Shown: one piece after another, positions 1 to 64,000 of the stretch
Numbering within the stretch: the first letter of the stretch is position 1
Layout: each line of letters opens with the position of its first letter
Origin: Saccostrea cucullata
Lineage: Eukaryota
Reading direction: 5' to 3'
Assembly (NCBI RefSeq): GCF_032062105.1
Contig: NW_026918862.1
Location: forward strand, 62,001 to 126,000
Length of the DNA: 64,000 nucleotides
The notes under the pieces: model-generated
What the model was told of the DNA's origin: nothing
What the model saw: only the letters and a program-made list of their open reading frames with translations
Databases searched by the model: none
Position numbers and translations under genes: made by a program

Positions 1-1770
1 TGTAAAAATTCTGCTTGCAATTAAATGTGTCATATGATTTCAGGGTAGTCAATGACTGACAATGAGACCTTTACAAAACATTTTGGAATTTTAGAAGACA
101 ATTTTCTAATTTTGCAAAAGCAGGAGCACTTTTGATACTCTGTGATAATTTCTGAATTCAAATTTAAAATAAGTGAAATATTGCTGTGAATTCCTGCAAA
201 AAACAATTAATTGTAACACCTGCATTTTTAATATACAAATTCTGTGCAACAGGAAAACACCGTTTTAAAGTATTCATTAACATTTAGTAACTAAACAATT
301 GAATTATCAATATTTTTACATCGGTTTTATCACTATGAAGAATATTCTGCTTTAAACTGAATCCTGTTCCATGAAATCAAAGAGGGAATGTAATTTATTT
401 ATGTCGGGTGTTCTTTGTTTGTCATCCTATTAGATATAACAGCAGTACCTTCTTCAAGGATGTGTGCGCATATATAGATAAAAATATAATTATGTAAGGA
501 ACACGTAATACTGAAGATTTTTTTTTATATACGCCGAAAAGTTATATTCAATTCAAAAATAAACTTTTATACATAAAATGGTTGATAAAAGAAAAAAAAA
601 ACATTTAGTTTGTACATTTCTATTTTCTCTCCTCCCTTCAAGGAACCAGTCACTGTAGCAAGGTGGAAATGCGTTTCCTTCGTGATCATGAGACCAAGGA
701 CAGATTCTTTTTCGCGGCGCAGCGTCAAAACTAAGCCGTAAAGATAGGTAGTGACTGTTCCTTCGACAAGCGCTTGGCATTAGAAGTATAAAGTCACAGA
801 TGTTTCGGATGTGACCATAAAAATTCTCACTGCTCAATGGACGTTTCATACGGTGATGTATCTAAATTAATTAGTGAACAATTCTCAAGAGGAGCCTTAA
901 ACAATATACAATCAATCAATCAATCCTGTTAAGGATTTGGTTGGTGTTAAGAGATTACATATGTAAAACGAGACCGTTTGAATGTATGTTTGAATTAAAA
1001 AGAAAATGCTAGTAAAAAGAAGCCAAATAAATAACAGAAACTTTACGTCATCACGGTTCAATATGTACTAGCTTCCTGAGAGTGTTGAATAAGCAATAAT
1101 TGTTTCCTTTAGACTTGTTTCCTACACACATGCCCCTCCTCCAAAAAAAAATGATAAAATCAGCAAGCGTTTCGGTGAAAAATTTAGAAAACTTATTCGG
1201 ATGTTAAGTATTTAGATGTGACTCCAAAAAAAATCATCAGAGCAGGAAGGATACATCCTTAATATATAATTCGTCAAGGTACACTTATATACCCAATGCA
1301 ACTCTATGTATAAGCTCATAATGTCTAGGACGTGTAAGAGTTTTCTTGAAAAGTAAGGAAATTAAGTTGTACAGTCGTCTTGCTATCAAACAACTAGACA
1401 GACATGTCTTATTCTTGGAAAAATAACAATTTTTGTGCTGAACTGTACAGGGATAAGTGTAAATAAACTTCTTTACAGAGTGAAAGGACAGTAAAATGAT
1501 CATAGGTGAAAAGGATGATTCTTCTTTTCCATTATGCTTCAAGATGAACCGATTTTTTTTATGTTTACTCGTCCCAAAGACTTTATTTTTCAATGTTTTT
1601 GTACGATATTTTGGACAGAAAATAAGAAACAGATGGTTTACAATAGAAACTCAAAACAGCTTATTGACAAAACGTGCAACCCATAACTTAAAGCAGGCTA
1701 ATTACAGAAACTCTAATTCAAATGTTGCAAACATCGTGATATTGTATAGCAATTTTTTAGAGCTATTGGA

Positions 1771-1805
1771 TATATAATTATATATCGTTAGGGATGCTGT
1801 TCATC
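1771..1805 (+). promoter_or_regulatory. TATA box / initiator of peptide gene A
   Basis: TATATAA at 1771-1777, ~30 nt upstream of TCA at 1801 and 60 nt upstream of the ATG; homologous TATATA in paralog B at ~15330-15336 (-). Confidence 0.5.
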
Positions 1806-1830
1806 AACTGTTCCCAAGCTGAAGGACACG

Positions 1831-4279
1831 ATGCGATTTCTCTGCATTTACTTGATTGTGAGTAATAACTTTGATTAGCGTTCTGTTCAATTCTTTTCTA
1901 TTTCTCTAGGAGTATCTCAGAATGTACAGTAGTTTTTGAACCAGATTAAAAAAAAATGTGCACAATTTAAAATATCTGTGAAACATAGCTTATTGTCAAC
2001 TTATGACTCTGAAAGTGCTGGTTAAAGATTGCAGCCTTAAAATGTGTTTACTGATATTTTGAAGAATTTCTTTTTTGTGTTACACACGATTTCGCTTAAA
2101 AAATACAACAGCACATGTATGAAGTCGTAACAGTGCTGCTTTGAAAAATAAAGCCTTTTAACCCAACTGTTGATATTTTCTTTTTATCATCAAATTGTTT
2201 GGTGAAAGGTTGTCTCATTTTAGAAATTATTTAGATGAGAAGTATGCTGTTATGTATCGAGTGAACTTTAAAACAAATCTGTATAAAAAAAAAGCTTGTG
2301 TTTGCTTAACTTATTGATATTACGTCACAGATTTATTTGAAACTTAGTTTTTCCTATATTATAGATGAGGATCAAGATATTTACGAATCTTGTCATCACG
2401 AAAAACAAATGTGATTAAAACAAAACTGAGACACGGTCATCAAAATAGTTATCAATATTCTTTGTTCGAATTTAATTTCCATCACGTAGACGCTAAATAA
2501 GGCGGCAGTTAAGTGCTACAGAAACGTACTGGAATGTATCTTGTACAATCCCTCAAAATATCAAAAAGTCACCAATATCACTATAGATTATGAGTTTTTA
2601 AAGGGGCATTGACACAGTTTCAGCTTCAGTTTCAATTTTTTTTCCATTTTCCATTTTTTCCATTTTACAAATATTTAACTAGGGTCTTTATTAAGATCAT
2701 CAACAAGTTGAACGACAGTTGTTTATTATTGTTGTCTAAAGTAACCTGGTTGAATTCTTGCTGCTTTCGATATGTAGGTCCAGTTTTAATTCTCTTTTAC
2801 AATGCTTTGTAAAGCTAGGATGACTAACGTATGTTTTGGCACCTTTGCTAGGTACTAAGTCATCAAGATTCCCTCACACGACATGCGCCTGTATGACCCA
2901 ATATTTAACAGTCTCAATTTTAAGTCTATTAATTTTCAGTATTGTGCTGTCTCTAATGTAAGTGAAATATTAAAAAAAAATGACACAAACCGCACCAACA
3001 ACAAAATACTTAATATTTTTTCATAAGAAGTATATATTTCAGTTATGTTTGATTTACATGAGATGATTTTAACAATTCAACTCCTAAGTTTATGTTTATA
3101 TCTTAAGATCTATATATGTATGTTTATATCTATAGATCTATATGCTAATGTATATGTCCATGTCAATGGCAGAAAGGGAGAGGGCATATTCAGTGAAATT
3201 TAAAGGCGAACGCGGGCCTCATGGCAGAGAGTGTAAATATCATTTGAAATATCTCTCTTTTGCTTTTTATCTGTCTTTTTCTTTGAGAACAAGTGAAATT
3301 TAATTTTTCCAATTTCAAATTTTACAGTTTTTATATGACAATGCCTTGTGTCAGTGGATTTTTACACTAAACTACACAAATTAGATAAAACTCCACTAAA
3401 ATTAGCAGATCCAAATTTTACCTCTATTTATGAAGAAAAACTGTTTTATGTTACCACAATAAGAGAGTCTTTTGATATGAAACAATCTCTAGCCTTCCCC
3501 TTTATTAAATTTTTATTTTAGTCCTTGAATCAAATTAAATAAAAACAGGGCGTTAAGTCTTGGAAGCAAAATGGTGTAAAACACGCACAAATGAGAAAAA
3601 ACTCCACCACAATATGCTGATACAAATTTAACTTTCATTACTGAAGCATTTATTATAGTACAATAAGACAATTATTATTGAAGATTCCACTTATATATTG
3701 ACTTTAAAAAGAAAACAAAACTGTCATGAATAATACATTATTTGTTCTAAAAATGTCTCCAGTAAATATTTTCGAAGCGCATTTGATACAGATTACTTAA
3801 TTTTTATCATGCAATGTTCTGTAAACATTTAATTCTGTGATTATATTGACGAAATCATTCCCCTTTTTTCTGGATCAAGAGTAGGTAGTCGATATAAAAA
3901 ATAATCTCTGCCCCCTTTTCATTTCTTTTTATTTCAGTCTTCGAGAATCAAATTAAACAATAGCAACGAGTAAAAATATGAAAACAAAATTATGTAATAT
4001 TTGCATGCATTTTAATTCTAAAAACATTTTTACAGTGAATGAAGACCAACATGAAATTCCAGATGGACAGAGAGCATTGAAATCCTTGAAGTAAGAATAT
4101 ATCATTTAGGCATGCTATGTTTTCAATTAGTGGAATACTTTTCAATCAACAAAATATCATGTTAACTTTTATTTCATTTTTTATTACTATTTATCAATTA
4201 TTGCCTATCTGGAGACACTTTGCAACCTATATCAATTTGCAGGAAGAAAACATACTGGGACTGGACATTACCTGGATAG
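1831..4279 (+). CDS. Small secreted prepropeptide gene A (4 coding exons, 71 aa)
   Basis: Exons 1831-1857, 3136-3232, 4036-4090, 4243-4279; all introns GT-AG with phases 0/1/2 in frame. Protein MRFLCIYLIIYMLMYMSMSMAERERAYSVKFKGERGPHGRELNEDQHEIPDGQRALKSLKKKTYWDWTLPG*. Hydrophobic N-terminus, KKK site, terminal Gly. The paralog at 13701-15277 has the same exon phases. Confidence 0.75.
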
Positions 4280-4745
4280 ATTCAAGGAACAGACACCACG
4301 ACAATTGAAAACCAAGCCTTGATGTATTTATGCCTTTTACTATAAAGTAAATTATCTCAAGCTTAACATTTGAGTTTCTTTTCAACTATGCTACAGTGTA
4401 TGACGCAGAATTCCACACATGACAGACATTTTTAAATTTTGTATTACCTCATCCTATCAAAAAAAACTTAAGAAATCAATATAATTAAAAAACAGGATTG
4501 AGTAAAAAAAATATGTTATTTTTTTCAGTATAGTTCATCACAGTCTGTTTACTTTTATTAAAGAATGTCTATAATGCACATCAATGGTGTCCAATTCAGA
4601 GATAATAAATAAAAAAATCAATAAAAAATATTGAGTGAAGTTTTATGGTAAATCAAAGCCTGAGGGTTACAAAGTATTCAAGACAGGTGACTACAATCGA
4701 TAATACCGGGTAATTGAATTATGATTTGCAATACAATATACTCTA

Positions 4746-4951
4746 CTATAAACAGGCTTATTTTCGCCCTGTGGTAATTTCGCCCTTTTACAATTGCTAA
4801 AAACTTCCTTCATTTAAATTCACCCAGTCACAATAAAAAAAAAAGAAATTATACTGTGTTCTCTGAATTCCCCCTTTTTAAAATTTGCCAATTTGTGGCA
4901 AGGGCGATAGGGGCGACTTTAACACGGGGACATAAATTTCCATGCATACAG
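4746..4951. mobile_element. Tc1/mariner-type MITE (TA TSD), same family as 56594-56785
   Basis: TA|CTATAAACAGG...CATGCATACAG|TA ends; internal TTTCGCCC/GGGCGA motifs shared, inverted, with 56594-56785. Confidence 0.6.
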
Positions 4952-5019
4952 TACTCCTATGTATTGTGATGTAAACTTTAATTAATTAACACTTTTTCAA
5001 TTTATGTATTTTAACATAC

Positions 5020-5188
5020 NNNNNNNNNNNNNNNNNNNNNNNNNNNNNNNNNNNNNNNNNNNNNNNNNNNNNNNNNNNNNNNNNNNNNNNNNNNNNNNNN
5101 NNNNNNNNNNNNNNNNNNNNNNNNNNNNNNNNNNNNNNNNNNNNNNNNNNNNNNNNNNNNNNNNNNNNNNNNNNNNNNNNNNNNNNNN
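5020..5188. other. Assembly gap
   Basis: Run of 169 N. Confidence 1.
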
Positions 5189-7079
5189 TAATTTCAAGAT
5201 ATTATTTCATTCTTTCATATATATCCAAACCATATGAACGTCCTTTGTATGCATGGAAGGGGCTTTATGTACCAGCGGGCACGAGGAGGTTAGGTGAGGT
5301 ATATGTATGAAAAAAAATGAAGGGGGGGGGGGCATATTATCAATCATTATTGCTAGTATTGAAAATCCATGTTTTGTTAAGCGATCATTACGAAAATTGC
5401 ATTTAGTCAAAAAAACGAAAAGATATGCATACCAACACAGGTTTCTTCAGTAAAATTAACTTAATTTAAACAATATTATTTTTATTATGATTAAACATAT
5501 CAGGATTGAAGAACAGGCATTGCCTATGTATGTCCTTTCAAAAGTAGATTGATTTATAATTGAAAACAATGGCTTATTACTTAGCAGGGTTCATATTATA
5601 CATGTAATGCCTGTTCTAATTACAAAATGACGCAGTATAAGACACACCGGATCAGTGCATTAAAAAGGATTTATTAAATTCTAGCAATTGAAATACAAGA
5701 TTGATTTCCGTGATTTTAAATTTGTAATTCTACTTTCATTTTCAAAATGAAGTTGGTTTTATGTTACGAGAGGTTTCCCCGATACAGTGCCGAATATCGC
5801 ACTTTCTGTTATATTTTAAAAGTACGGTATGAAATTAAACGTGGATCCAGGAAATTTCAACGGGTTCGGGGTTAGGTTGGTCCACACCTATATCAATATA
5901 GATCCAAACTCTGAAGTTTTCTGACAAGCAATAAAATATATCCAAATATGAGTGACTTATGTTTAAGGGGAGGTGAGATTGGGAGAGAGGGGTGCTTTAT
6001 TTCTTAATCATGATTCTCCTTAGCGACCCATCAAATTACCGTAAACGGGTCATTATCTTCTTAGTCTCTCAAAAAGTAATCAAAGTAGTGCTTTTCTTTG
6101 TTTGTTTCTGAGGTGCTTCTCAATGTTCTTCATTGCAAATATCTCAGACGATGTCAATAAATAATTTTTTTCGTCTATCATAAAAATTGAGTGCATGATA
6201 CACAAAAGCATATACACAAAGACTGTAAATACATATGTACAATTTTTACCCGAAGAACAAGTACATGTAAATAGTGATTTCAACATCTAATGGCATACAT
6301 TGCAAAATATTTTGTCCGCCAATAGCGCTTGTTTCTTATCACACACCTACAGGATGTCCATTTCCATGAAACATTGACCTGATTCTGTAAACAGAAATCT
6401 AAACACGGAAAAATAGTTTCCCTTAGAAAATAATTTCTAATTTACACAATTACATATATCAATTAATCTCAAATTAATGAGCTTTTTTATCGGTAAAATA
6501 TATACATTTCCAGATTTCCGAAATTTTACGATTGATATGCTATATACATGTAAACTTAAAAAAAAAATAAAAAAAAAACATGAATGGAACACCCGCTAAC
6601 ACAAACAAACTCACATTCCACGGATACGTCTTTTCCAAATTATTTATTTCTCATAAGAATACATTTGATTAATTATATGTTAATTAAATTTTATAAGAAA
6701 AAATTAGAAGTAATTTAAAATTTCCTCTTTTTATACCTGCTTCTGTTTTATTTTTACCACATCATATCGCTGTTATCAGGAACAAATATAATTCAGGAAA
6801 ACGTCTGCTGTTCTAAAATATTTTTCCAGTAACCATTTTAAAAGTCATAAAAGATAAACAGTTGTCCGTAAATTCGTGGACAGCATTGGTAATAAAAGTC
6901 AAATACTAATATAGTATATGAAAGTTATTTTTTCATAAAATTTTTATATATTTGATTAATCTATAAGTTTTTAACAAAAACAAAGCACAGATGATTCTAT
7001 TTTTATCAAATACAAAAAGGTACACACTCATACCCAGAGCACTGAAAGGAAAATCCTTGAAATTTTGAATAAGTGAATG

Positions 7080-9150
7080 TCTTAACAAGTTTGTACGAAA
7101 TTTTGGTAATTTTAGATTATAATTAGTTTCAGATCGCAAGTTTTAAGAAGTTCAAGAATGAAATTCAAATAAATTATGTGTTAATGTTGCAAATGTTGTA
7201 AAATAATATGTATTTGTATAGATCAACTAGCTCGTAAGCTGTTAACCATCCAAGCTTCTCAAACAGTGGTTTACAAGAAGAATCAGGATTTGCGTCAAGA
7301 ATAATCTTGATGCCCTTTTTATAATTTAAAAAGTCTGTCCATGTCATGCTTGGGGCATTACCCCAAACAGTAAAAAAATAGTTAATAGACAGTAAAATAT
7401 AGGCATTATAATATAGTTTCCTGGTATGAAGAGGGAGAAATTTCTTAATCTTGCGAAGAGTAAATAACTTGTAATTTAAGGTTTTACAAACCGAATCAAT
7501 ATGATTCGCATACTGTAACTTATCATCAATATGTACACCAAGGTTTTTTTTTTCAGTTTCAACCATTTCAACTGTTTTATATGAGGCAAAAAGTTGTAAA
7601 TTTGGATTATTCAGTTTTGATTTTCTTTGTTGTGTTCCCAATAACATACATTTTGTTTTATCTACATTTAATACCATTTGATTTTGAGCAGGGCATTTCT
7701 CATTCTCCTAAAGAACTGAATTTAGTGTATTTTTAACCATCTTGCATTATGATTACTAGAATACAGAGTAGCAGAATCAGCAAACATATCAATATTCGAA
7801 TTGTTTACATGTAAAGGAAGGTCGTTTATGTACAATGAAAAGAGAAGTGCACCCAAAATTGACCCTTGTGATACTCCTGCTGTGACGGGTAAAATATTGG
7901 AATGTGTTCCAAATTTACTACGCTGGATCCTGTTGTAAAGACATGACTGAAACCACTTTATAGCTGTTAAGTCAAATTTGCAATGGGTTAATTTTTCTAG
8001 AAGAATATTATGATTCACAAAATCAAATGCTTTACTAAAATCTATAAATGTAATTCCGATTAGTTCACAACGATCCATTGCATTAAGCCAACTTTCTGTT
8101 AGTTTTGTAAGGGACGTTTGACAGGAATGCAGTTCCCTACATCCCGACTTGGATTGTGCTAGCAGATCAACTTCATTAGTGAAATTTTTTATTAGCTTAC
8201 CTACATGTTTTAAATCAATTTAGATATAGTTGGTACAATAGAAATAGTACGATGATTATTCGGCTCAGATTTGTCCCCTTTCTTAAAAATAGGTGTTACT
8301 TTGGCTTGTTTTCAATTTGTTGGATAAATACCACTCACTATGATAGAGTGGATAAGATATGTTAACATACATATTTACATGCAACTTTCAAAAAACGCGG
8401 TCCAGAAATCATGTATGATTCTAAATTTGCCAGGATCAGATTTTTGTACGACCCCTAGGGGAGACGATATGAAAGGTACGAAAGGAGACGATGTGAAGGG
8501 ACCTGCAAATTTATTATTGTTTAGCCCATTGGTAATAAAATCATCAAGTACTGAGTGATGGCCAATAGTACTTTTGTGTTTTTTTATAAGATAGAATTTG
8601 GAATGCCTTGGCAAAAAAAAAAAAATGAAAGTCATATGAGGACCCTTTCTGATTTGAAGTTTCTTAGAATCATAACCTCCTAAAAACTTAATCATTTTAT
8701 TTATTGTTTTGACTGGTGTTAGTAAGTTTGTGGTTTGACCCCTGGGGTTTTGATGATCCAATGCACTTAGATTTTTGGTGATTTCTTTGCATTGTAAGCA
8801 AATATTTTTTAATGGTCAAGGGTTTCGGAGACAAGGTGTTAAAGTGGAAACAAAATTTCCCTCAAAACGACTGGTGTTGAGCGTGTTTATTGTAAGTTTT
8901 AGTGAGGGTTGCAACTTTTAATTTCAATTCTTGAATTCGATTTTACCAAGGGACATTTACTGTTTCTTTGAGCTTCCTAAGCTGTTCGTCAGACAATCTA
9001 AGTGGTTCCTTCTGAAAAAAATTTAAATAATCAAATGTTACACCGTTTTCAATTTATTTACTTCTGCTTTTTTTATGAACATATAGTTTGTTTTCCATAT
9101 TTTTCCACACAATTTCTTCTAATGTGGTAGGAGAGTAATGATAAACATTT
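7080..9150 (-). pseudogene. Degenerate non-LTR retrotransposon (CR1/L2-like LINE) reverse transcriptase
   Basis: Broken frames with VTPIFKKGD, FIDFSKAFD..NHNILLEKL, GVSQGSILG, MFADS (YADD position), LNVDKTKCM and LGVHID motifs; frameshifts and stops; interrupted at ~8355-8700. Confidence 0.88.
8400..8600 (-). mobile_element. DIRS/Ngaro-like tyrosine-recombinase retrotransposon RT fragment inside the LINE
   Basis: FAGPFTSSPFVPFISSPLGVVQKSDPGKFRIIHD matches the DIRS RT N-terminal pattern (GPF...SPLG.V.K...K.R.IHD). Confidence 0.65.
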
Positions 9151-11406
9151 TCATTTTGACAGAAATTGATTTTATTTTAAAATTATGATTAAATCGTTAA
9201 TTGATAAAATATGAAATATATGCAATAAAGAAAATATAGAAGCGCCACAAATATTCAAAAAAAATTTATTATTATTTACTACTCGAAGAAATTAACTACC
9301 TCAGTAACGTAGTTTAGTGGGTCAATAAAGATGTTCATGCCTTTGGAAATTAAGTAGCCCCCTCCAACCCCCGATCCCCCTCTTTTCAACATAAGTTGAT
9401 TGAATTATTTTCACAGTCAAATAGCTTGGATCTCATTTGAACTTGGTGAAGAGGAACCAAACTCTTAAATAATTCATTGATCCCGGTTTAATTTAAGTTT
9501 TTACCCATTAACTATGAAACAGGCTGCGGAATTCGACACTCTTATTGACCATCTCCCTAAAGATAGTCATCTGCTTTGTAAAAGTGAGGGTAGAATTAAA
9601 AATGTAAAATTGAGGAAATCAATCTTGAATTTCAATTGCTTGAATTAAATATAAGTCCCTCTTAATACAATGACATTGTCTGTCTTATACTTCGTTATTT
9701 TGTAATTATCACGTGTTCTATGATATCAAGCACGCTGAGCATTAGTCATGTTTTTCAAGCATAAATGATTCTACTCGAGAAACATTTTCTTTTCTTTATG
9801 ACTAAATGCTGTTTTCGTTATGCCAGTTTACAAATAAGGTCAATCTTAAGTACTAAAGTTGAATGTTTTCTTTTTTTCAGTCAAGAATTTGTTACACATG
9901 TAGTGAGGTATGAATATGGTATGAGATATGACACAATGAATTATGTATAAAACCGAGAAATAAGCTTTAATTTTGATTATAATCAATTATAAATATATGT
10001 TTAGCATGAAATAAGGTGCACATGAATAAACCTGAATGGAAATGTACTATAAATTAATTAAAGTCTTCCCCAGTTATACGATAGTATACGAGAGCTATTA
10101 GGAAATTATTGAGACAATGTGTATATTTTTAGTTTCTTATAAACACCTTTCCTTGGAAATTTTCATATACGTTAAAAAAGCATTAAAAACTCATAAAAGC
10201 AAGAAATATTTTATGAATATTTTTTTTCTCTTCGAGGAATATAAATGAATCGAAGTTAGGAGAACCGAGCAGTCTCAATAAATATTTTACACCAATATTA
10301 AATCTCCCTGTGGGCCCTTATAGGAGCGAAAATTATTCAATTTATGTGTATATCTTTTTTTTTAATTCAATTTCGACTTCAAATTGTACCAGTTTTTCAT
10401 TTTTTTTTTAAAATTTTCATCATGAATATGGAGATCATTAAAAGAAATAGGCGCAGTAAAGAAATATGATAAGGACGACAAAATGCATTTTGACATCAAG
10501 GTGGAGCAGCGAGCATACCAGAAATTTTGTGAAGCGCTACGTAGAACTCTTATCCAGATTGAAAATAAAAAAAAGAAAAAAAAAAAGAAAAAAGACATGT
10601 CCACAGATTTGTTATTTTATTGGTATATAAATTTTTTTCTACGCGGCTAGGATAAGGCTGTCCGTAAAATATCAAACTGTTCAAACTGAAAGTACTTCTC
10701 TGAACTACCTCGATATGACGTCATAATATAATATAACGTGAAGTCACCGCATACTTGAGCTTACCTGACGGGAAAGTGTCATAATTTTTACATATGGCAT
10801 GTATATTTTTAAGGACGTTGTAGTTTAATTCAAGTGCTGGGATTGATTTTATGCTCAATGTGCTGTTATGATGTTGAACATTTGGAATATATGTATCCCT
10901 TTTCCTTTTGCTTGTCCAGTACGTACATATTCAAACAATAGCGAAAAATAATATGTGAAACAGTCCCCTTACACGTCCGTAGAAAGAGTTAGAATTTTAT
11001 GAATCGTGTTTATATTTGACTGGAACAAGTGAAAGACAAGGATAAATTGAAGATATTCTCTGTGAATTTACAAGAGAATTATTTCTCTCTAACTGAATTT
11101 TGCTGGGGGATTGTATGTAGTTCATCCATTTTTGTATAAATCGCGATAAGGAGTGGAATTTACCCCTTCTTATGTTGGTAAGTTGAGTTTGTCGTAAAAT
11201 ATTTTCTTAAGAAGTAAAATTTAAACCTGCCCCCAACACTTTTTATGTACCAGAGATCACGATGAATAAATATATGTAACAAACTGTGCACAGTAATTTT
11301 GTTTTGCACTTGTGCTGAAGCGATTTTGTGAAACATTTGAGTATGTCATAAAAGTCCGTCACGTGATCAACACAGTCATGTGACATCACAGAATTGCTTT
11401 ATTATA

Positions 11407-11584
11407 CAGCAAAACTCGCTTAAAAGGAAGTAGCTGGGACCTTTGAAATTACTTCGCTATATCATATATAATTCGTTATAACCGTACAAGAAAGTCATTA
11501 AAATTATACAGATGGGGATCCAAAATGACTTTGCTTTATTTGTGCATTCGCGATATCCGTGTTCGTACTAAACGAGTTTTACTG
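11407..11584. mobile_element. Tc1/pogo-type MITE (178 bp)
   Basis: TA|CAGCAAAACTCG ... CGAGTTTTACTG|TA: TIR with 1 mismatch and a TA duplication. Confidence 0.75.
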
Positions 11585-13100
11585 TAATACTTGATTAAAC
11601 GATTATCTCAAGTTCAAACAAGCTCAAAATGAAATCTATATTTTTTAGGCATTTTAAGCCTTCGGACAGTTTTATTATAACTGCGTAACCAGTAATTCAA
11701 ACATTATAGGAAAAATGAATACTCTGTACAAATATAGATTATCACAGAATTAATAACGCTGACATGTGTAGTAGAAAAGTTGTTGTGACATAACTGCTAT
11801 CAGGGGTTACTTTTGCTACGACGGATTATATTTACCTACAACGAATTCGATAGTTTTCAAACAATAGTGAATAAATATGACGCCTTATAAATAGTTCCAA
11901 TAGTTCTGAAATATGTTATTTATAAGGAATACTGCATTATCTATGATTTTTTTGGACCCTATCGAACAAATGTCCTTTCATGAAAGAGAATGAGCGGGTC
12001 TCAATTCAATAGGGATATGTATTTCCAAGAAGTCTACCTTATATGGCAAGGTTATTATTCCTCACATAGTTGCCAACCGAAAACGGTTGTCCAATCAAAT
12101 GACAGATTTAGAAATCATGCTGGTTTACTTCACATTTATATTTTATCACATTCACGAAGTTAAGGTCAATTTACTTTTTATTCTCTTTTACATTTCAGAC
12201 TTTTAATTGTCAGCCAAACATTAAATATTTTAATGTTTACGGTTTTGGGTCAAGAAATGCCCATGAAACTTGTATTCACTGATACAAGGAAATGCGCGTA
12301 GACATACGGCTAGCGAATTACCCACCACACACTTTACAGAATTTTTAACTAATTTTAAACTAGCCAAAGAGGAAAATTGTACGTACTTGCGCTCGTATAT
12401 ATTCAAAGCTTCAAAAAGTAGGGCAGGGTCAAAATTCAATCAGAATTGGATGTAATTATGAAACCTGTACCCAAGTAAGGTTTTTATATCTTTGAAATCA
12501 TGTTTCTGTTTTTGTTAACAAATACTATTCCGTATTGGTACACATATCAATAAAAAGATACATACAGAACTTTGAGAATAATTTAGAAATTCATGTTTTG
12601 TCAATTTACCAAAGGCCGTTGATAACTGCATCCTTTTAAGCAATACATGATGCTTAGGCATACTGTTAATAGCCAGTTTGATGCATGAAAATAAACACTG
12701 ATGTAGCAACAACATATATATATATATTTTAAAAAAAGAATCCTAAAGAAAAGAGAGATGTATTTCTATGTTATAAATGAAAACAAACAGAAAAAGATAA
12801 ATGCTTCCCGGTCGATTTCGATCGAAAACATCTTCCCCTAACGTAACGTTTAAAATTGACGTAGCGATGCTGCCTCCAGGTCGATGGGCATACGTACCGA
12901 GGTATGTTTATAATTTCATCGGAAATTATCTAGATATCCCGTGAATTAGAAAGTTTGAATACTTGTTTTATTTTTTCTTTATATAAAGTCGATGGATTTT
13001 CATGAATTTATATCATGGACATTTTAATTTTATATTACTAACAGATAATATTTAAGCATTAAATTCATATTTTGGGATGCCTTCGGTCCTATAACACACC

Positions 13101-13163
13101 TGGCCGTGCCGACAAATTGAATACCGCGCGTTAGCGCGGTATGATAATTTGTCGGCACGGCCA
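13101..13163. repeat. GC-rich near-perfect palindrome/hairpin
   Basis: TGGCCGTGCCGACAAATT (13101-13118) pairs with 13146-13163; inner ATACCGCGC-gtta-GCGCGGTAT. Confidence 0.9.
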
Positions 13164-13700
13164 TGTGCCGTTTGTGACGTTGGAAAGTTAAATAACGCAA
13201 ATAAACATTGCGAGGGAAAAAATGACAAATTAAATTTTAATGCACATTTGTTGTAATTTTATGTTAATTTTAAAAGGGTAGTTTTTTAAATGAAATTGAG
13301 TCAAAACAATATAGATTTTGTTGTTCATAAATATTGAAAATGCATGTAGTTCCTACTGTATATTCTAACACGCGGTGACAAGGTTTTGCGTGTGTTATAA
13401 AAATTTGAACGTCGTGGATTTCTAATGGATTTCATAAAGAAAATTACACTGAATGTAAATATAATGTGATGGACTGCTTCTAAATGATGTATTTAATAAC
13501 GATATATTTATTTTTTTTTTGGGGGGGGGGGTAACACAAATTTAACTAATGTCATTCATATATGGAATTTATGTAATATATTAGTTGAATTAGTTGAAAA
13601 TTGGTTGGATATCTGTTGAGAAATTTAACTTTATTGTAACAGACATACAGATTCATGAAAGCCTTGGAGTCTGTTCCTTGAATCTCTACACATGTTAAAA

Positions 13701-14642
13701 CTAGTCGAGGTCCCTTCCACCTCGTCTTGGTATACCCCAGAATGATTTCCTCCTGTAAATTCATATCAGCTATAAAGTCCATCAGCATATGTAACAAGTG
13801 ATAAAACAATAATAATATAAAAGGAAATATAAAGTAACTGTTGATATTTTCCAGATTGAATAATATTCCACTAACTGAAAACATGGAATGTATATATGAT
13901 ATAATCTTACTTCAAAGTTTTAAATGCTCTCCCTCCGTCTGGAAGTTGTTGTTGGTCTTCAAACACTCGAAAACCTATTTAGCATTGAAGTACAAGCCAA
14001 GATTTAATCGTTTTGTTTTCATGTTTTAAGGCGCTGTGACTATTTAACTTGATTCTAAGACTAAAATAAAATTTGAAAGGGGGAAGCTGGAGACTGCTTA
14101 ATATCCACAACCTACTGTTGATCCAGAAAAGAAAGTGAGAGGGATTCAATTAATATCAACACAGGCTTAAATGTGTGTAGAACATTGCATAATAAATATT
14201 AAATAGTATTATCAAACGTAATTTCAAAATGTGTACTTGAAACATTTCTCTTAAACAAAGATCTTATGTTTCATAAGAAATATTTTTGCATTAAAATATA
14301 TATTTATATTTTTTAAATTCCCAAATAAAAGATAATTTTATTGTGCTATTAAAAAAATTCTTCTACAATAATGAAAGAAAAATCTGATCTGTTAATTGTA
14401 GTGATATTTTATCCCATTGGTGAAGTTCTTTTTTTCTTGTATTTAAATAAATATGTATGAACTCTTCAACTATAAAGCTGTTTTATTGTGTTATAATTAC
14501 ATAAAAAAAATGAAGGAAATTTTATCTCATTTGTAAAGTTTACATTAATCTACTGACAGCAAAAAAAAATTGTTTTGAAATACACTGTCAAATTCGAAAT
14601 TTTATAAGCTATTTTTTCTTATTTTTATTTACTAGACAAAGC

Positions 14643-14704
<62 letters not shown>

Positions 14705-15277
14705 TTTTCAAGCGATATTTACCCCGTCTACCAATTCGACCAGGTGCGTCATGGTATCCTAAAATTCCTCTTTCTTCTGTTTGGAGTGACAAATTCAGAG
14801 TCAAAGAGATCTAGAGATATAAAAACACATATGAGTTAAACTGGTAAGAAACTGTTTTGTCTTTCAAAAATAGACTCCAATACTTATTTCTTACAAAATG
14901 TATTGAACATTTTTGTTGTTAGTTTTTTTTGCATCCTTAGAAAAAAATATTTTCACTAATATGATATAACAGCAATGCTGAAGACAATCGACTTTAATTT
15001 AAGACATATTCAAAATATCAGTATACACATTTTATGGTTGATTAAAAGTGACTTAAAGATAATCCTTAGACAGCACTACAGCAATTATAAATCGTCAATA
15101 AGCTATGTTTCATATATGTAGGTATTTAAATTGTGCAAAAATGACCCTTTTTTAACTTCATCCAAAAATATTTTATATTCAAACGATACGCGTAGAGAAA
15201 TAAACAAGAATTGAAAGGGAAAGAAAATAATCAAAATTATTACTTACAATTAAGTAAATGCAGAGATATCGAATCAT
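13701..15277 (-). CDS. Small secreted prepropeptide gene B (4 coding exons, 77 aa; paralog of gene A)
   Basis: Exons 15277-15248, 14810-14723, 13974-13911 (or 13965-13911, in frame), 13752-13701; GT-AG introns, phases 0/1/2. Protein MIRYLCIYLIISLTLNLSLQTEERGILGYHDAPGRIGRRGFRVFEDQQQLPDGGRAFKTLKRKSFWGIPRRGGRDLD*. AATAAA at 13630-13635 (-). Confidence 0.75.
14644..14702. repeat. (GA)n microsatellite in intron 2 of gene B
   Basis: ~29 uninterrupted AG/GA units. Confidence 0.98.
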
Positions 15278-31500: not shown

Positions 31501-34500
31501 AGTATTATCTTATCAAAACTTACCACGGTTACATTCCTATAAAGTTCAATAAATATATTCCAAATGTTCCTCAAAAATCCTTTTAACTGGTTCTTCTTAA
31601 GATGAAACTAACAAGTCATTAGTTAATTTTATTTCTTCCAAGCCATACAATTCCTTACCCCTAAAACACGACTTCTCTAATCAACTTATCAAATCAACAT
31701 ACCAGAAAGCACATATATCTCGAAACATTTTTATTAAGTCTAAGTAGAAGATTAAGTATATAAGTAAAATTTTATCTGAAAACTACATACATGGCGACTT
31801 TTCTGAATGGAAGTAGTTTCCAAATAAACTCTAGATTAAAATAAGTTAAGTAATCTCCATGCATGTAACACAACAAATAACACATTTAACTCCAAAAATC
31901 TTTTACGATCGGGCTCGATGTACACCTTTTACGACCGCCAAGTTTGCTAACATTTCACAAGTTTACAAGGCTATATACCTGCAATAGTCTACTTAAAACA
32001 ACTTAAACTGCAAGAAAACAGGATTCTGTCCATAAATCTATGGTTAATCTACTACGGAAGACCAATCAAAATCCCTGGCACTCGAAGTAAGCTCAAACAG
32101 TTTCACAACTTAACTACTGCTATAATCAGCTGATTTCAATATGTACACGTTACAAACTATTTCAACTCATGTAAATCTGTTAAACTTGTCAATTATCACC
32201 TTTCAACAACATGTAAAGCATAAATTAATACATATTCTTGCATTGTCAATTAACTAAAACACAAAAGAAAAATCATCTCAACCTCGTACAATGTCAACAA
32301 TAATCATGTTCAATAACTGTATAAAACTAATCTGTCAGGCTGTCAATTCACTAAGCTGTTACAAAATATCGATCATCATTCATTCAAAGCCACATATATT
32401 TATTATTTACCACTTGTTAAAATGGCTACAACATTATTTCAATAAATCTTAAGCTTAGTGACTAGCACAGGCTAGACCCTCTGTATAGGTTAATAGCACT
32501 TAACTCATTGATAGTTATAATTAATAGTCCAACAATACAAGTAAATGGCAGCCATATGCAGAAAATTCAATTTTTGTAGGCAGTTGTAAGCTAGGTTCTT
32601 GTTTATTACATTTATTAGGACATTGAAATCAACATTAAAATTTTCTCTTGAACCTAATCAAATTACGCCAGAAAACCACTTTGATCTGCAAACGAAACTG
32701 TCTGGGGAATCTATCTTGTCCTCAGTCCTATACATGTACAGATATGTGACATAACTGCAAAGAAACTGGTAAGGGATTAAAGACTTCTAAGGAAAACTGC
32801 TTATTCCCAACACCCCAGCAGTAACTAGAGAGCAATAAATACCTAACTCCTGGAAACTGTTTGAAAACTTCTAAAAAATTTTAAACTGCTAAAGAATTGC
32901 TTAATAACTGCCCATATATACAGCGGCGGATCATAATATTATAAACAAAATGGCGTCGTCGCGTTATTAGCAACATACGGATCCGGTATATAAAAAAACG
33001 ATTTCTCCATTATAACAGATTTGTATAAATGAAACTTACCTAATATTTTGTGGCATACCCCTTTGATCTTATAATCTTGATCATTCGTTGTGGAAGTGAT
33101 CTGTAAAGGTTCCGTATATAATGAATGGGGATGGTGGTCCATATTCTCCGAATTTCTTGTTCTAGATCCGCTGCGTTGGTAATTCTGTTTGCACATTTTC
33201 TAAGCTGATTTTTCAACAAAAGCCAACAGTTTTCAATTATGTTAGCATCCGGAGATTGGGCAGGCCACAGCATTCCTCGAATATTATTTTCAGTTTTGTA
33301 ATTTAGCACAATCCTTGCGCGATGTACTGGCGCATTGTCATCTTGAAAAATAAAGTCATTCTGTGGAAAATGCTGGGCAACAACTGGCCACAGTTCATTA
33401 TCAATTATTTCCCTGTACTTTTCAGCTTTGATATTGCCATTGACAACTGTCAAAGTACCTGGTCCATTCCAGCAGATACATCCCCATATCATTAGACTAA
33501 CCTTTGCGCCACGACTGGGGCTAATGCATTGCGGCATCCACTCCTCTCCGGGTCTCCGCCACACATATACGCGATTATTTTCTCCAATAATCACCTTACA
33601 TTCATCAGAAAAAATAACACGATTCCAGTCACCATCAACTTTCCAATGCCTTTTCCCCCTAGCCCACTCAACTCGTTTCTTTATGTTTACATCTCGGATT
33701 CGTATGTTTTTTCTTACAACTCGTCTATGGTATTTATTTTGGAACAAACATCTTTTTACAGTTACTTCTGAAACAGTATCCCCCCTAAACTTTTTGAATC
33801 TGGCAGTGATATCTTTCAGAGGTTCGACACGATGTGTTTTTACCAACCTTAAAATTGACCGTTCGTCCTGCACACTAAGTTTTTTCTTTCTTCCCTTTCT
33901 AGGATTATTCTCCACCGAACCCCGCTCCTGATATCGCTTTATCACAGCACAAACTGTACATGGGTTTGATCCCAGGCACTTTGCAATTTTTCATTGTTTT
34001 ATTCCACTCTGAAAACTATTTACGATCCTTTGTTTTAAGCTTGGTGATAAATCTTTCGCCTTTCCCATTCTCTGTTTACATACAGAATGACGTAATTTAT
34101 TGCATCACAATCATGATACGTCATATCTTATTATAACATAATACGTCTTTTAACCCAGTCATGTGCCCTTTTTATTGAAACATGCATACTGAGAGGAGCT
34201 ACAGATAAATAAGAGTGATCGTTTTTTTAACCGCAATTGGAACGCCATTTTGTTTATAATATTATGATCCGCCGCTGTATATCCATGTTGTCCCATTCAG
34301 AGAACATAACAGACGCTGATGACTTTGTTGCACAATGACATGTTGGTGTGATAATTATGAATTCTTATTTGATATATAGTATCTCTTATATGTCTGTATG
34401 TTTTTTCATCCCACTGGTTTGAATGTGCAGGTGATAGCTGATCAAAGTTGGAGACATTATATTAAATGTTTAGGCCAAAGTTTTTTTATGTCTTGGTTTA

Positions 34501-43659: not shown

Positions 43660-44960
43660 AATTTTTTTCCTGATTTTTTAGCATTTTAAGGAAGAGGCCT
43701 TCATTAATCTTTTCCACTTAAGTGCATTTATAAAGAATCCTGATTTTTTTATGCATTGACACAATTCCAATTCAGTATTTCATTTATCAGAAATGGTTTT
43801 TAAAATTGACTTGAACTGGACTGATAATCATTTTATTTTTATTTTCCATTACATGCTGAGTGGCCGGTGTAATTTATGAGTTAGTTTTATACATGTATTT
43901 AAAGTATAGTTTTGAATTGGTGCATTTTTTATGTTTAGCAGCTTTGGTATTACGATTTATAAAATACTCATTATATGTTGTAAAGTATGTTTAGTTTTTT
44001 TAAAATATTTTTTTTATAAGCTCAAGCGTTTTGTATTTGAAAATTGTATGCTCAAGCGTTTCGTATTTGAAAATTGTAGCATGTTAAATTTGTGTTGGTC
44101 AATTCGTTTTGTATTAATTCCAATTCCAATTCAGTATTTCATTTATCAAAAATGGTTTTTAAAATTGACTTGAACTGGACTGATAATAATCATTTTATTT
44201 TTATTTTCCATTACATGCTGAGTGGCCGGTGTAATTTTTGAGTTAGTTTTATACATGTATTTAAAGTATAGTTTTGAATTGGTGCATTTTTATGTTTAGC
44301 AGCTTTGGTATTACGATTTATAAAATACTCATTATATGTTGTAAAGTATGTTTAGTTTTTTTTAAATATTTTTTTTATATGCTCAAGCGTATTGTATTTG
44401 AAAATTGTATGCTCAAGCGTTTTGTATTTGAAAATTGTAGCATGTTAAATTTGTGTTGGTCAATTCGTTTTGTTTTAAACTTGAGTTTTATTTCTTAATT
44501 TAAGGCTTATTGTTCTCAAACTGAATGGAAAATTTTTTCTGATTTTTTAGCATTTTAAAGAAGTGGCTTTCATTGATCTTTCTCACTTAAGTGCATTTAT
44601 AACGAAACTTAGGTGTTTTATGCATTTAAACAATTCAAATTCAGTATTTCATTTATCAGAAATGGTTTTTAAAATTGCCTTGAAATGGACTGATAATCGT
44701 TTTTTATTTTTATTTTCCATTACATGCTGAGTGGCCGGTGTAATTTATGAGATAGTTTTATACATGTATATAAAGTATAGTTTTGAATTGGTGCATTTTA
44801 TGTTTAGTAGTAAAGTATGTTTAGTTTTTTTTACATATTTTTTTTATATGCTCAAGCGTTGTGTATTTGAAAATTGTAGCATGTTAAATTTGTGTTGGTC
44901 AATTCGTTTTGTATTAAACTTGTGTTTTATTTCTTAACTTTAGGCTTATTGTTCTCAAAC
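43660..44960. repeat. Recent tandem triplication (~360-510 bp units) just 3' of the OB gene
   Basis: CAATTC(C/A)AATTCAGTATTT...GAGTGGCCGGTGTAAT block recurs at 43762, 44121 and 44631 with high identity. Confidence 0.92.
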
Positions 44961-45737: not shown

Positions 45738-46208
45738 TTACTGTTAACTTGCAATATCATGTTGAAGATGTAACTTATTTATTGTACATTGCCCTATCAT
45801 GTTGAGAGCATAACTTATTTACTTCACACTTGCCATTTTATGTTGAAGATATCACTTATTTTCTATAAACTTTCCATATCATGTAGGAGATGTAACTTAT
45901 TTCCTTATTTTGCCTTACATGTTGAATATGTAATTTATTTACTGAACACTTGCCATATCTTGTTGAATATGTAACTTATTTACTGAACACTTGCCATATC
46001 TTGTTGAAGTTTTAACTTAATTATTACAGCACTTTTATCATATCATGTTGCAGATGTAACATGTTTTCTGTACCCTTGACATATCCTGTTGAAGATGTAA
46101 CTTATTTACCGAACAATTACCATATTTTGTTAAGTTTTAACTTATTACTGTAAATGTGTCAAATCATGTTGAAAATGTAACATGTTTACTGTACGCTTGC
46201 CATATCAT
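45738..46208. repeat. Degenerate ~41-bp minisatellite (~11 copies)
   Basis: Unit TGTTGAATATGTAACTTATTTACTGAACACTTGCCATATCT; period 41 at 45961->46002. Confidence 0.9.
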
Positions 46209-48623: not shown

Positions 48624-51600
48624 TTACTTTTTCAGGTTGACTAACACTGCTTCATGATAGCTGTAGTATGTGGGTACCTTAAATGTCTCAAGTTCCAATG
48701 GACATGTTGTGTACACCAAATCTAGTACAGTTTGCTGCTCAGTTGTGGGGAAACTTACAACTTGTGTAAAGCCTTTCTCAAACATGAACTTTTGTACTGG
48801 TCCACCAATTTTTGCATTCTCATTGAAATCCCCAAGTATGATGCCTCTGTAATTTGGTAATAATACTGATTTCATCACATTTTCTAATGCTATCAAGAAG
48901 TCTTTGGCTGGCAAGACAGAAGGTCTGTAAATATTCACCAAAATTACTTGCTCTTGTATTAGCTTTAAAGCTATACACTCTATGTTTTTCCCACAAATTG
49001 GAATTATTACAGCATTTGAGCTTTTTCTGCTGTACACTGCAACACCTCCACCGTTTGATGTACGTAATCTATCTGTTTTACAATTCTCACTATTATATGA
49101 CTCTGCTCTCGATATATGACAGAAATTGTAATCCTCAATTTGAAAGTTTGCTGTATCTTGACCTTGTGTCAGCCATGTTTCTGTTAAACACAGGATATCA
49201 GCATTCCAAAAGCGACAATCATGTTTCAGATTTTCAAAATTTCCAGCTAAACTTTGAATATTGTGTAAGATGATCTTTGTACAACTTAGCAAACTTGATC
49301 CTTCATTTTGGACTGGAAACAAAAGTGGCATTTTTTCAATTGATGATTTAACATCGGCATCAGCATGTATCTTCTTTTCTAGGAGTGCCTCATCTGCTGT
49401 CTCTATAAAAAGCCCTCTCAAAGATGTTACTCGACTTAGTGCAACATATGCCTGTCCAGGGGAGAATGACTTGTCTAAATTAACAACAATTTGGTCTGCT
49501 GTCATACCTTGCACTTTATGGGCTGTGCACGCCCAGGATAACTTTAATGGAAACTGGTGACGAACAACACTTTTTGATTTGTTTACTTTGACTTCTTCTT
49601 CTATTCTCTCTATGAGAACTATGTGCCCATTTGCAGCACTTTTCCCTGTTTTTTTTCCAACATTTTTGTTATCAAATTGAACACCTATTGCTTTGATAGA
49701 AGATTTTCCATTTTTGTGTTCTGTCAGAAAGTGTGAGATATTACCCATTACACCATTGACCAACCCATCATCTACATTGATGTTTCTTATAAGCATAACT
49801 CTTGCATTTACTGAAAGAAGGATGGAAGCACTTAGTCCGTCTAACTTGGTACTTGATAAGGGACTCTCTCTTAGTGAAAGTTTTCCAGTTGTTTTGTCTT
49901 TCTGATAGTCTAATGCATCAATTTCAACAAGTTCTTCAGATGTCTTTTTCAGCATAGACAGATTGAAGTTATTCACCTCATCATTTGTTGAATATACATG
50001 CAAAGCATCTTCTGGACCATCTCTAATACAATTCTTCAGCATATGTTTGGTTTCCTCTGACAAGTTTTCCTCCTTTGTTCGTATGCGTAAAGTGTTTAGA
50101 AACATTGCAAATGGAACATCTTCACGCTGCCTCATCACTTCATTTAATTCAACAAGTTTAAAAAGTTCTAGCCAGTGATCATCAGGATATGATCCATTTT
50201 CTTTGTATAGACGTTCATTTTTTGATTGCTTTACTGGTGGTAGTTGAAAGAAATCACCAACAGCTAGAACTGTAACTCCTCCAAAGGGCTTTTTGCATTT
50301 TTTAATTTGAACAAGTCTTTCATGCACATAGTAAAGGAGCCTCTTATATACCATTGACACTTCATCAATGACAAGGATTTGTAGCGATTCCAGTTTGACT
50401 CTAAGAGTACTAAGACTCTGTTCATTCTGTGGTTCATACGGGAGTGGTAAAAATTTTGTCAATGCAAAAACTTTATGTATTGTGTTTCCACCAATATTAA
50501 AAGCTGCTGTGCCCGTGAATGCTGTTAAGACTACGGAAACACAATCTGGTGATGGAAGATTTTTACTGAACAAACGTTCTGCTTCAAAATGGACAGCTTT
50601 TATCAGATGGCTTTTCCCTGTTCCAGCTCCACCAGTAACAAAAATATGAAGTGGATCAATTTCTTCACCTGCGACTCTTTTTAGACACCAATCTCGCACA
50701 TGATAAAATATTTTCTTTTGTGTTTCATTCAAGGATTGCAGAACTGGTAATATTTCCTGCTTTGTGCTATTACTTTGCTGAACTACATATGAGAGATTTT
50801 CTGTGGGAAATACATTGTCAATATCAGGGAGCACATCATTATGGTCATTTTCCTGCAAATCTGGTCTTTTTCTTGTTGACATACATTCTTTTCTGCTCAC
50901 TTCAGTCTCTGGACAGAGTTGGGCCCATGCATCTTCTGGTTCACCGACCATGTCAAATACTTCTTGAGCGGAGTTAACGACATCTTCATTTTTAGCAAAA
51001 CAAGCTCGATTTGCATCCACAATAGATTTTACAGATTGCAATTTCCTTTTCTTAGACATTCGGATATGTCCCTTTTCATAAAAAGACATGTACAAGTCAA
51101 AACCTTTGGGTTTTAGTTGTTCCTCTTTCCTGTGTGGCAAATAAAGTTGCAGTAAAGACTGATAATACTTTTCTGATGATTTTTCTGAGCTGAACCTTGG
51201 GTATCTGATCACAGCTGGATTTGTTCTTGTTCTCTGCTGTATAAAACCTTTTCCATTCTGCAGCTCATACACAGACTCATTTGGTCCTTTTGGCACTTGG
51301 GATTTTGATAGAACTCTGAACTCTGAACAGAACTGTGCTAGACACATCCCTTGAAACTTATCACTGTCTGGTCGATTTTCATATCGTTCTATAATATTTG
51401 TCATCCAAATACTCTCTTCGTCATCGTCGTCATCATCATCATCACATTTTTGAGCATTTCCTTCATATTTTTTCCTTTTCATTTGAGAAAGAGGTTTACT
51501 AAGGCGGGTTGGGTTGTCACCAACAGGTATAAATACAATTTTTCTAGAACACTCCTTCATTTTTAAGTTACAAACTCTGTACACAGCCTCCTGGGCACTT

Positions 51601-63664: not shown

Positions 63665-64000
63665 ATGCAACACACTGTCAGGCTAACAAGAGTTCACACA
63701 ACACACTGTCACGCTAACACGAATTCTCAAAACAGGCTGTCTCACTATTCACTAACACAAGTTCCCACCAAACGCTGTTGCGATAACACACTGTCATCCT
63801 AAAACCATTTCACACAACATACTGTCATCCTAATACCATTTCACACAACAAACTGTCAGGCTAACACGAGTTCACACAACACACTGTCACGCTAACGCAA
63901 ATTCAAAAAACATGCAATATCGCTAACACGAGTTCACATAACACGCAGTCTGGCTAACACGAGTTCACACATTCAATATGCAATCTTGCTAACACGAGTT
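63665..64000. repeat. Degenerate 31-bp minisatellite running off the window edge
   Basis: Unit ACACACTGTCAGGCTAACA(A/C)GAGTTCACACA; period 31 at 63670->63701. Confidence 0.9.

Follow-up and report, generated by a model that had tools for sequence, protein, structure and literature searches.

A Candidate Pair of Four-Exon Genes for Small Secreted Two-Peptide Precursors in an Inverted Duplication of the Saccostrea cucullata Genome

Gene Structure and Paralogy

The stretch of DNA analyzed here (the window) comprises 64,000 nucleotides (nt) of the Saccostrea cucullata genome (assembly GCF_032062105.1, contig NW_026918862.1, positions 62,001 to 126,000) and carries near its start two convergent paralogous genes on opposite strands, designated G1 and G2, each with four exons and each predicted to encode a small secreted precursor of two peptides. 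The exon coordinates of both genes were rebuilt by script. G1 is on the forward strand, with exons at 1831–1857, 3136–3232, 4036–4090, and 4243–4279 (216 nt, 71 amino acids and a stop codon), and G2 is on the reverse strand, with exons at 15277–15248, 14810–14723, 13965–13911, and 13752–13701 (225 nt, 74 amino acids and a stop codon). All six introns begin with GT and end with AG, are in phases 0, 1, and 2 in each gene, and occupy homologous positions in the alignment. The donor sequences in G1 and G2 are GTGAGT and GTAAGT for intron 1, GTAAAT in both for intron 2, and GTAAGA in both for intron 3; the introns are 1278, 803, and 152 nt long in G1 and 437, 757, and 158 nt long in G2. An earlier note, made by a model from the letters of this stretch, had described two convergent four-exon paralogs with these phases, canonical splice sites, and TATA boxes, a description borne out by the rebuilt models and their alignment, and the end coordinates that it gave, 1831 and 15277, are exactly the two ATGs. 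As the note had also remarked, the genes are invisible in the lists of open reading frames (ORFs), which contain none of the G1 or G2 exons because the longest exon has at most 32 codons.

The four exons divide the predicted precursor in the same way in both copies. Exon 1 contains the ATG and the first codons of the signal peptide (nine in G1 and 10 in G2) and is 89% identical between the genes. In G1, exon 2 encodes the remainder of the signal (3136–3171), an ERER motif (3172–3183), peptide 1 (3184–3222), a G-R site (3223–3228), and the start of the spacer, up to the phase-1 donor. The corresponding exon of G2 encodes the signal remainder (14810–14781), a TEER motif (14780–14769), peptide 1 (14768–14733), and a G-RR site (14732–14724). 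Exon 3, which is 80% identical in the two genes, encodes the acidic spacer, and its phase-2 donor in G1 interrupts the first Lys codon of a tribasic site. The coding part of exon 4 completes this site (KKK) in G1 and continues with peptide 2 (4250–4273), a Gly codon (4274–4276), and the stop codon; in G2 it completes KRK and continues with a peptide 2 region (13745–13704), followed by the stop codon (13703–13701). Approximately 32 nt of G2 exon 4, including the stop, have no counterpart in G1.

Conserved blocks that may represent promoters precede both genes, at 1720–1752 on the forward strand for G1 and within 15389–15328 (a range that also includes the TATA-like box) on the reverse strand for G2, and TATA-like boxes begin at 1771 and 15335, 60 and 58 nt before the respective ATGs. 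Downstream, G1 has a variant poly(A)-type hexamer at 4341–4346, 62 nt after the stop, and G2 has a canonical one at 13635–13630, 66 nt after the stop. The TATA-like boxes are at aligned positions in the two copies, as are the hexamers, and a purine is present at position −3 of the ATG in both genes. No third copy was found in the window by blastn-short with all exons and promoters or by six-frame motif searches.

Several local features distinguish the two copies. A second, frame-shifting acceptor-like site is produced by a 28-nt tandem duplication (2.3 copies, 3092–3155) across the acceptor of G1 exon 2. An (AG)29 microsatellite at 14644–14702 starts 21 nt into G2 intron 2. About 870 nt of G1 intron 1 (approximately 2063–2915) have no counterpart in G2 and were either inserted in G1 or deleted from G2. 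A five-exon version of G1, with a 19-nt micro-exon at 2940–2958 and an acceptor at 3170, was considered and rejected; the micro-exon falls within the approximately 870 nt that are missing from G2, whereas the four-exon model is collinear in both genes.

Predicted Precursors and Products

The predicted G1 precursor consists of a signal peptide, ERER, a peptide 1 of 13 residues, G-R, an acidic spacer of 19 residues, KKK, and a peptide 2 of eight residues followed by a terminal Gly. The G2 precursor has the same order, with TEER, a peptide 1 of 12 residues, G-RR, a spacer of 18 residues, KRK, and a longer peptide 2 region that contains an internal RR and ends in GG-R and three further residues. 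In both, peptide 2 begins with Ser or Thr, an aromatic residue, and Trp, and the basic site that precedes it is interrupted by the phase-2 intron. The spacers are identical at 10 of the 17 residues encoded by exon 3. Net charges of the predicted peptide 1, spacer, and peptide 2 are +3, −3, and 0 for G1 and +1, −1, and +3 for G2, and the sole cysteine of the products is inside the signal peptide. The two N termini are signal-like in having a basic residue at position 2–3, a run of 18–19 uncharged residues, small residues at −3 and −1, and a maximum 9-residue hydropathy of 2.6–2.8, a combination of features that is found in 0 of 277 control ORFs starting with ATG (at least 30 codons) from the remainder of the window. 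The position of the signal peptidase site is ambiguous by 1–3 residues.

In the pathway that these features suggest, each gene would give rise to a very small mRNA (∼330 nt) encoding a prepropeptide of 71–74 residues, the N-terminal 20–21 residues of which would act as a signal peptide and be removed at entry into the endoplasmic reticulum. Proprotein convertases of the subtilisin type would then cut after ERER or TEER, after G-R or G-RR, and at KKK or KRK, a carboxypeptidase would remove the basic residues, and peptidylglycine α-amidating monooxygenase (PAM) would convert the exposed C-terminal Gly residues into amides. The end products would be two short peptides (8–13 residues) and the acidic spacer of 18–19 residues. 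The route through convertase, carboxypeptidase, and PAM is established for precursors with basic sites and Gly residues of this kind; for the G1 and G2 products we infer it from the motifs, and several of the cleavage choices are ambiguous. The spacer is the only part with recognizable amino acid conservation and could itself be a product.

All of the motifs that the earlier note had listed (ERER or TEER, G-R or G-RR, the conserved spacer, KKK or KRK, and a Trp-containing peptide 2) are present in both translations, with basic sites and Gly residues at the places required by the convertase and PAM amidation code that it had invoked and with N termini that are signal-like, by heuristic criteria, in both genes, as it had proposed. 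The four amidated products that it named represent one reading among several; the motifs that define them are in place, but the internal RR of G2, the ambiguous signal peptidase site, and the possibility that the spacer is a product allow others.

Retention of the Coding Frame

A four-exon ORF can be drawn almost anywhere in A+T-rich DNA, and the real test is whether a paralog keeps it at homologous positions. The coding sequence (CDS) of either gene, together with its splice dinucleotides, was therefore mutated in a simulation of neutral decay at the divergence of the introns (24–39%). From 5e-4 to <5e-5 of the trials retained an open frame together with the ATG and the full set of six GT/AG pairs, and when the splice sites were granted, the ATG and open frame were kept in ∼0.3–1.4%. 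The two alternative frames of the spliced mRNAs contain 3–6 stops in both copies, and only the predicted frame is open in both. The alignment of exon 1 has no indel and pairs a non-start codon followed by ATG in G1 with ATG followed by an Ile codon in G2; the start codon has therefore been replaced one codon away, leaving the frame unchanged. The sole clear internal indel between the exons of the two genes is 9 nt long. Because of the neutral-decay frequencies, the closed alternative frames, the shifted start, the 9-nt indel, and the signal-like N termini, it appears that G1 and G2 function as coding genes for putatively secreted products, or did so until very recently.

Divergence between the Two Copies

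The identity between G1 and G2 varies markedly along their length, being 74% in the 300 nt upstream, 89% in exon 1, 68% in the aligned part of intron 1, 52% in exon 2, 61% in intron 2, 80% in exon 3, 76% in intron 3, and 59% in exon 4. When the exons are divided by function, DNA identity is 73% in the framework (signal, Glu/Arg motif, spacer, and basic site) and 51%, with many gap columns, in the peptide cassettes, as compared with 65% in the introns; Fisher tests gave values of 0.003 for framework versus cassettes and 0.028 for cassettes versus introns. The peptide-1 cassette is at the level of shuffled sequence (z 1.3–1.7), as compared with a median z of 4.4 for homologous 45-nt pieces of intron and a z of 9.8 for the spacer. 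Nei-Gojobori counts, which have little power with two sequences of ∼70 codons, gave an overall ratio of non-synonymous to synonymous change (dN/dS) of ∼0.67, with the cassettes near saturation at both kinds of site; the two spacers differ by 12 non-synonymous and two synonymous changes. Since the conserved exons have changed no more slowly than their non-coding neighbors, the real signal is the accelerated change in the cassettes and not a slow framework.

In neuropeptide paralogs the ligand is the conserved part, the reverse of the pattern seen in G1 and G2. Because the cassettes have diverged beyond the introns, a fast-evolving role of the exocrine or defense type is placed, with modest confidence, above a neuroendocrine role. 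A pre-pro region that is conserved and a mature peptide that is hypervariable have been reported together for MgCRP-I (PMC4558851), myticalins (PMC12294457), and conotoxins (PMC4278219).

Searches for Relatives

The spliced models were searched exon by exon, a procedure of low power that reveals only near-identical proteins of similar length. A phmmer search with G1 exon 2 against 1.84 billion representatives gave 0 matches, and a word-indexed search of a 5.8-billion-cluster collection, using genomic ORFs that contain G2 exon 2, G1 exon 3, and G1 exon 2 and that were chosen so that the length filter admits proteins of 71–74 residues, gave no candidates. Metagenome scans with the exon-3 alignment and with a conserved DNA pattern of exon 1 and its donor found no match, nor did Pfam searches with the exon pieces, and the four predicted peptides and both spacer cores occur in 0 papers in the full text of 8.4 million. 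These blank results carry no weight with respect to divergent relatives, longer fusions, or unassembled small transcripts. The protein collection does contain the exact Helitron protein encoded elsewhere on the same contig, and it therefore seems that G1 and G2 are unannotated there as proteins of 30–107 residues.

Comparison with Known Peptide Precursors

Two families of mussel peptides are among the nearest parallels to G1 and G2. Myticalins are linear, cysteine-free antimicrobial peptides of Mytilus (PMC12294457, PMC5577615), the genes of which have three exons, with the CDS in exons 2 and 3 and a single conserved phase-1 CDS intron (PMC12294457). Like them, G1 and G2 are clustered paralogs that are predicted to encode small secreted cysteine-free prepropeptides with a hypervariable mature peptide in a conserved frame, and the first peptide is followed by a basic site, often with a Gly amide donor ahead of it, and then by an anionic segment. 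The myticalin precursor, however, has a strongly cationic mature peptide, a dibasic site, and only an anionic C-terminal extension, whereas peptide 1 of G1 and G2 has 12–13 residues with a net charge of +1 to +3, and beyond the acidic segment there are a tribasic site and a second peptide; the CDS is also divided among four coding exons by three introns in phases 0, 1, and 2. With gene structure and architecture both different, G1 and G2 are excluded from the myticalins on structural grounds. In the MgCRP-I genes of Mytilus galloprovincialis, exon 1 is non-coding and is followed by phase-1 and phase-2 introns, the last exon starts in a dibasic site, and the mature peptide has six invariant cysteines in a C-C-CC-C-C array (PMC4558851). 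G1 and G2 likewise have four exons and three introns, with a predicted mature peptide that is hypervariable and a pre-pro region that is conserved, and their last two introns (phases 1 and 2) and the start of their last exon inside the basic site (KKK or KRK) resemble those of MgCRP-I. They differ in that exon 1 is coding in the models and the signal is split by a phase-0 intron, there is no cysteine outside the signal, and two peptides surround a spacer, as compared with one mature module after a pro-region. In the absence of the cysteine array, G1 and G2 are not members of MgCRP-I.

A different resemblance is to the precursors of linear peptides in spider venom, in which the processing quadruplet motif (PQM) has Arg at −1 and Glu at −2 to −4 and the inverted motif (iPQM) has Arg followed by Glu within three positions (PMC7889660). 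The ERER of G1 and the TEER of G2, each placed after a predicted signal peptide, fit the PQM before peptide 1, as in the latarcin and cupiennin precursors, and the spacer starts of both genes fit the iPQM; short linear peptides, some of them amidated (in G1 and G2 by prediction), and an anionic linker are further common features. The spider linkers, however, end in a second PQM, whereas the G1 and G2 spacers end in KKK or KRK and lack Glu in the three positions before this site, and the spider peptides are longer, cationic, amphipathic, and many per transcript. The protease that acts on the PQM is not known outside the venom glands of spiders. We regard the likeness as one of a possible mode of cutting, with no sign of common descent or of membership in the group.

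The layout as a whole is like that of prohormone and neuropeptide precursors, with a predicted signal, short peptides flanked by basic sites, Gly amide donors, and an acidic spacer. The peptides are bounded by basic sites with Gly (G-R or G-RR after peptide 1 and KKK or KRK before peptide 2), the end of peptide 2 is G-stop for G1 and GG-R for G2, and the N-terminal signal is called by the heuristic criteria that none of the controls passed. In neuropeptide families, however, the bioactive peptide is conserved, whereas the peptide cassettes are the most divergent part of G1 and G2, and no orthology to any named neuropeptide was found. The conotoxin superfamilies (PMC4278219) resemble the pair in their conserved signal and in the focal hypervariability of the mature region after gene duplication but are mostly disulfide-rich, come from the venom duct of cone snails, and have no link to G1 and G2 in sequence or gene structure.

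Interpretation and Alternatives

The best explanation of these observations, to which we give about an even chance of being correct, is that G1 and G2 are intact paralogous protein-coding genes that originated by an inverted duplication and encode small, secreted, fast-evolving peptide precursors. The peptides would be directed outward, in mucosal or host defense, as toxin-like agents, or in chemical communication, rather than acting as conserved neuroendocrine ligands; this is suggested because the cassettes diverge beyond the introns, in contrast to the retained signal, spacer, promoter, and splice sites. The earlier note had offered neuropeptides, pheromones, and defense peptides side by side; the divergence of the cassettes opposes the first of these and favors a defense or exocrine role. 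The pair is best filed with a kind of gene already known, small secreted prepropeptides in which the frame is conserved and the products are hypervariable, and constitutes a credible unannotated pair of mini-genes for predicted secreted two-peptide precursors that belong to no recognized family. A further proposal, which is tentative and on balance doubtful, is that cysteine-free precursors of two peptides form an undescribed family restricted to one lineage, of which G1 and G2 would be the first members seen. In such a family the cassettes would outpace the introns, as in conotoxins, release would combine polybasic sites with PQM-like ones of the sort otherwise linked to spider venoms, and the genes would have escaped annotation by virtue of exons of <33 codons and an mRNA of ∼330 nt. 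The claim of the earlier note that the family is undescribed agrees with the blank protein, Pfam, metagenome, and full-text searches to the extent that single-exon searches of low power can speak to it.

Several observations weigh against intact genes for secreted peptides. The gene models are drawn from the genomic sequence, all external searches were blank, the signal peptides are called by heuristic criteria, and the poly(A) hexamer of G1 is a variant form. Their short length and weak positive charge (net 0 to +3) make the predicted peptides atypical of membrane-active antimicrobial peptides. At 89% and 80% identity, exons 1 and 3 do not exceed the adjoining intron and flank (76–88% locally) in conservation, which by itself is therefore not evidence of coding; the two sequences also give no signal of purifying selection at the amino acid level, with a dN/dS of ∼1.2 in the signal and spacer that is based on tiny counts. 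The level of local conservation and a dN/dS near 1 in the conserved parts are what might be expected if the pair did not encode protein and consisted instead of non-coding DNA, a spliced non-coding RNA locus, or decaying pseudogenes, the ORF being a result of common descent and freedom in the choice of exons. It is also in keeping with this alternative that no length-matched protein in the 5.8-billion-cluster collection, which does hold another protein of the same contig, has words in common with exon 2 of G1 or G2 or with exon 3 of G1, and that TATA-like and poly(A)-like hexamers are common in DNA that is 70% A+T. We nevertheless consider it unlikely, given that the joint retention of the ATG, the frame, and six splice sites has a neutral frequency of at most 5e-4 (and the ATG with an open frame remains infrequent when the splice sites are granted, as they would be for a spliced non-coding RNA), that the other frames are closed in both copies, and that the start codon was replaced one codon away and not lost. 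In addition, both N termini pass signal-like criteria that every control ORF failed, and the basic sites and Gly residues are kept at homologous positions within otherwise saturated sequence.

If the genes are coding, their products might instead be neuropeptides or peptide hormones for receptors of the animal itself, the ligand being either the two short amidated peptides or the conserved spacer with its flanking basic sites. The classical prohormone layout, with mono-, di-, and tribasic sites flanking the peptides, is consistent with such a function, as are peptide lengths of 8–13 residues, which are typical of neuropeptides, the start of peptide 2 (Ser or Thr, aromatic residue, Trp) that is kept in both copies, and a spacer that is the best conserved stretch and has cleavage sites on both sides in each paralog. 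The cassettes, however, diverge beyond the introns, with peptide 1 at shuffle level, which is the reverse of what is seen in neuropeptide paralogs; the spacer has 12 non-synonymous as compared with two synonymous differences, and the predicted peptide and spacer strings are absent from the full text searched. A neuroendocrine function is thus judged improbable. Less probable still is that the exons, although real, are parts of larger or otherwise different transcripts, with extra upstream exons or alternative acceptors, so that the true products differ from the models of 71 and 74 residues. The non-coding first exons of the related mussel peptide genes (PMC4558851, PMC12294457) offer a precedent, similarity between the copies reaches ∼500 nt upstream of the ATGs, and the 28-nt tandem duplication provides a second acceptor-like site before G1 exon 2. 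Against this, the aligned TATA-like boxes are 58–60 nt before the ATGs, the stops and poly(A) hexamers are also aligned, the alternative upstream acceptor of G1 shifts the frame, and the micro-exon reading of G1 uses sequence that is missing from G2.

If G1 and G2 are real and expressed, they would indicate that, even where a genome has been annotated, very small multi-exon genes for secreted peptides can slip past both ORF scans and the standard annotation process. The pair would also add a cysteine-free peptide family to an animal group in which almost all known defense peptides are cysteine-rich and, with a conserved frame set against saturated cassettes, would represent a compact case of focal hypervariability after duplication. 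The pair alone opens no long-standing question, and lineage-specific families of secreted peptides turn up regularly; the value of the finding hinges on evidence of expression and of the peptides.

The Inverted Duplication and Its Surroundings

The two genes are carried by the arms of an inverted duplication. Proximal arm A (1326–4480, forward strand) contains G1 and is paralogous to proximal arm B (15801–13500, reverse strand), which contains G2, with ∼69–71% identity over blocks in blastn and mafft alignments. A second, distal pair of blocks, at 5386–5755 (forward strand) in arm A and 9568–9822 (reverse strand) in arm B, forms an inverted match of 73–82% identity, and the duplication carrying G1 and G2 therefore formerly reached far past the genes. 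The distance between the proximal and distal blocks is ∼3.7 kb in arm B as compared with ∼0.9 kb, gap included, in arm A. This assembly gap (5020–5188) is the sole run of N in the window; it is intergenic, begins 741 nt beyond the stop codon of G1, overlaps none of the eight exons, and has no bearing on the reading frames. No similarity was detected between either flank of the gap (∼4480–5386) and the other arm. A listed ORF at 5004–5237 is an artifact of N translated as X. At the center of the inverted duplication, a reverse-transcriptase remnant extends over at least three separate ORFs on the reverse strand (7174–8761), with an RVT_1 match on the middle ORF. An origin of the genes from a transposon-derived ORF was considered and rejected; Pfam was blank on the exon pieces, there are only two copies, and the neighboring ORFs at 1285–1593, 1496–1777, and 13552–13884 have no Pfam match and are in other frames. 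A G+C-rich hairpin at 13097–13167, the 22-nt arms of which are 95% complementary and enclose a 27-nt loop, itself palindromic by eye, lies ∼530 nt downstream of the G2 stop.

The window as a whole is A+T-rich (G+C ∼30%), and the neighborhood of G1 and G2 is rich in transposons and otherwise apparently gene-poor; the 64 kb contain no tRNA gene, and no Rfam family reached its gathering score. An uninterrupted ORF of 2622 residues on the reverse strand (48624–56492) has matches to Helitron_like_N, a PIF1-type helicase, DUF6570, an OTU protease, and an Exo_endo_phos endonuclease, with an additional weak match to a Herpes_teg_N-type protease, and appears to be an intact Helitron-type transposase; its exact protein is recorded in NCBI/UniRef. 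A 301-residue ORF at 33040–33945, also on the reverse strand, has DDE_3 and Tc3-type helix-turn-helix domains and corresponds to a transposase of the Tc1/mariner type. The window has three tandem arrays, consisting of two copies of a 361-nt unit with 96% identity (43762–44478), a 41-nt satellite of ∼11 copies (45747–46208), and 31-nt repeats from 63668 to the end of the window at 64000. Strong G/C and A/T strand skew is present at 26–30 kb and 40–46 kb.

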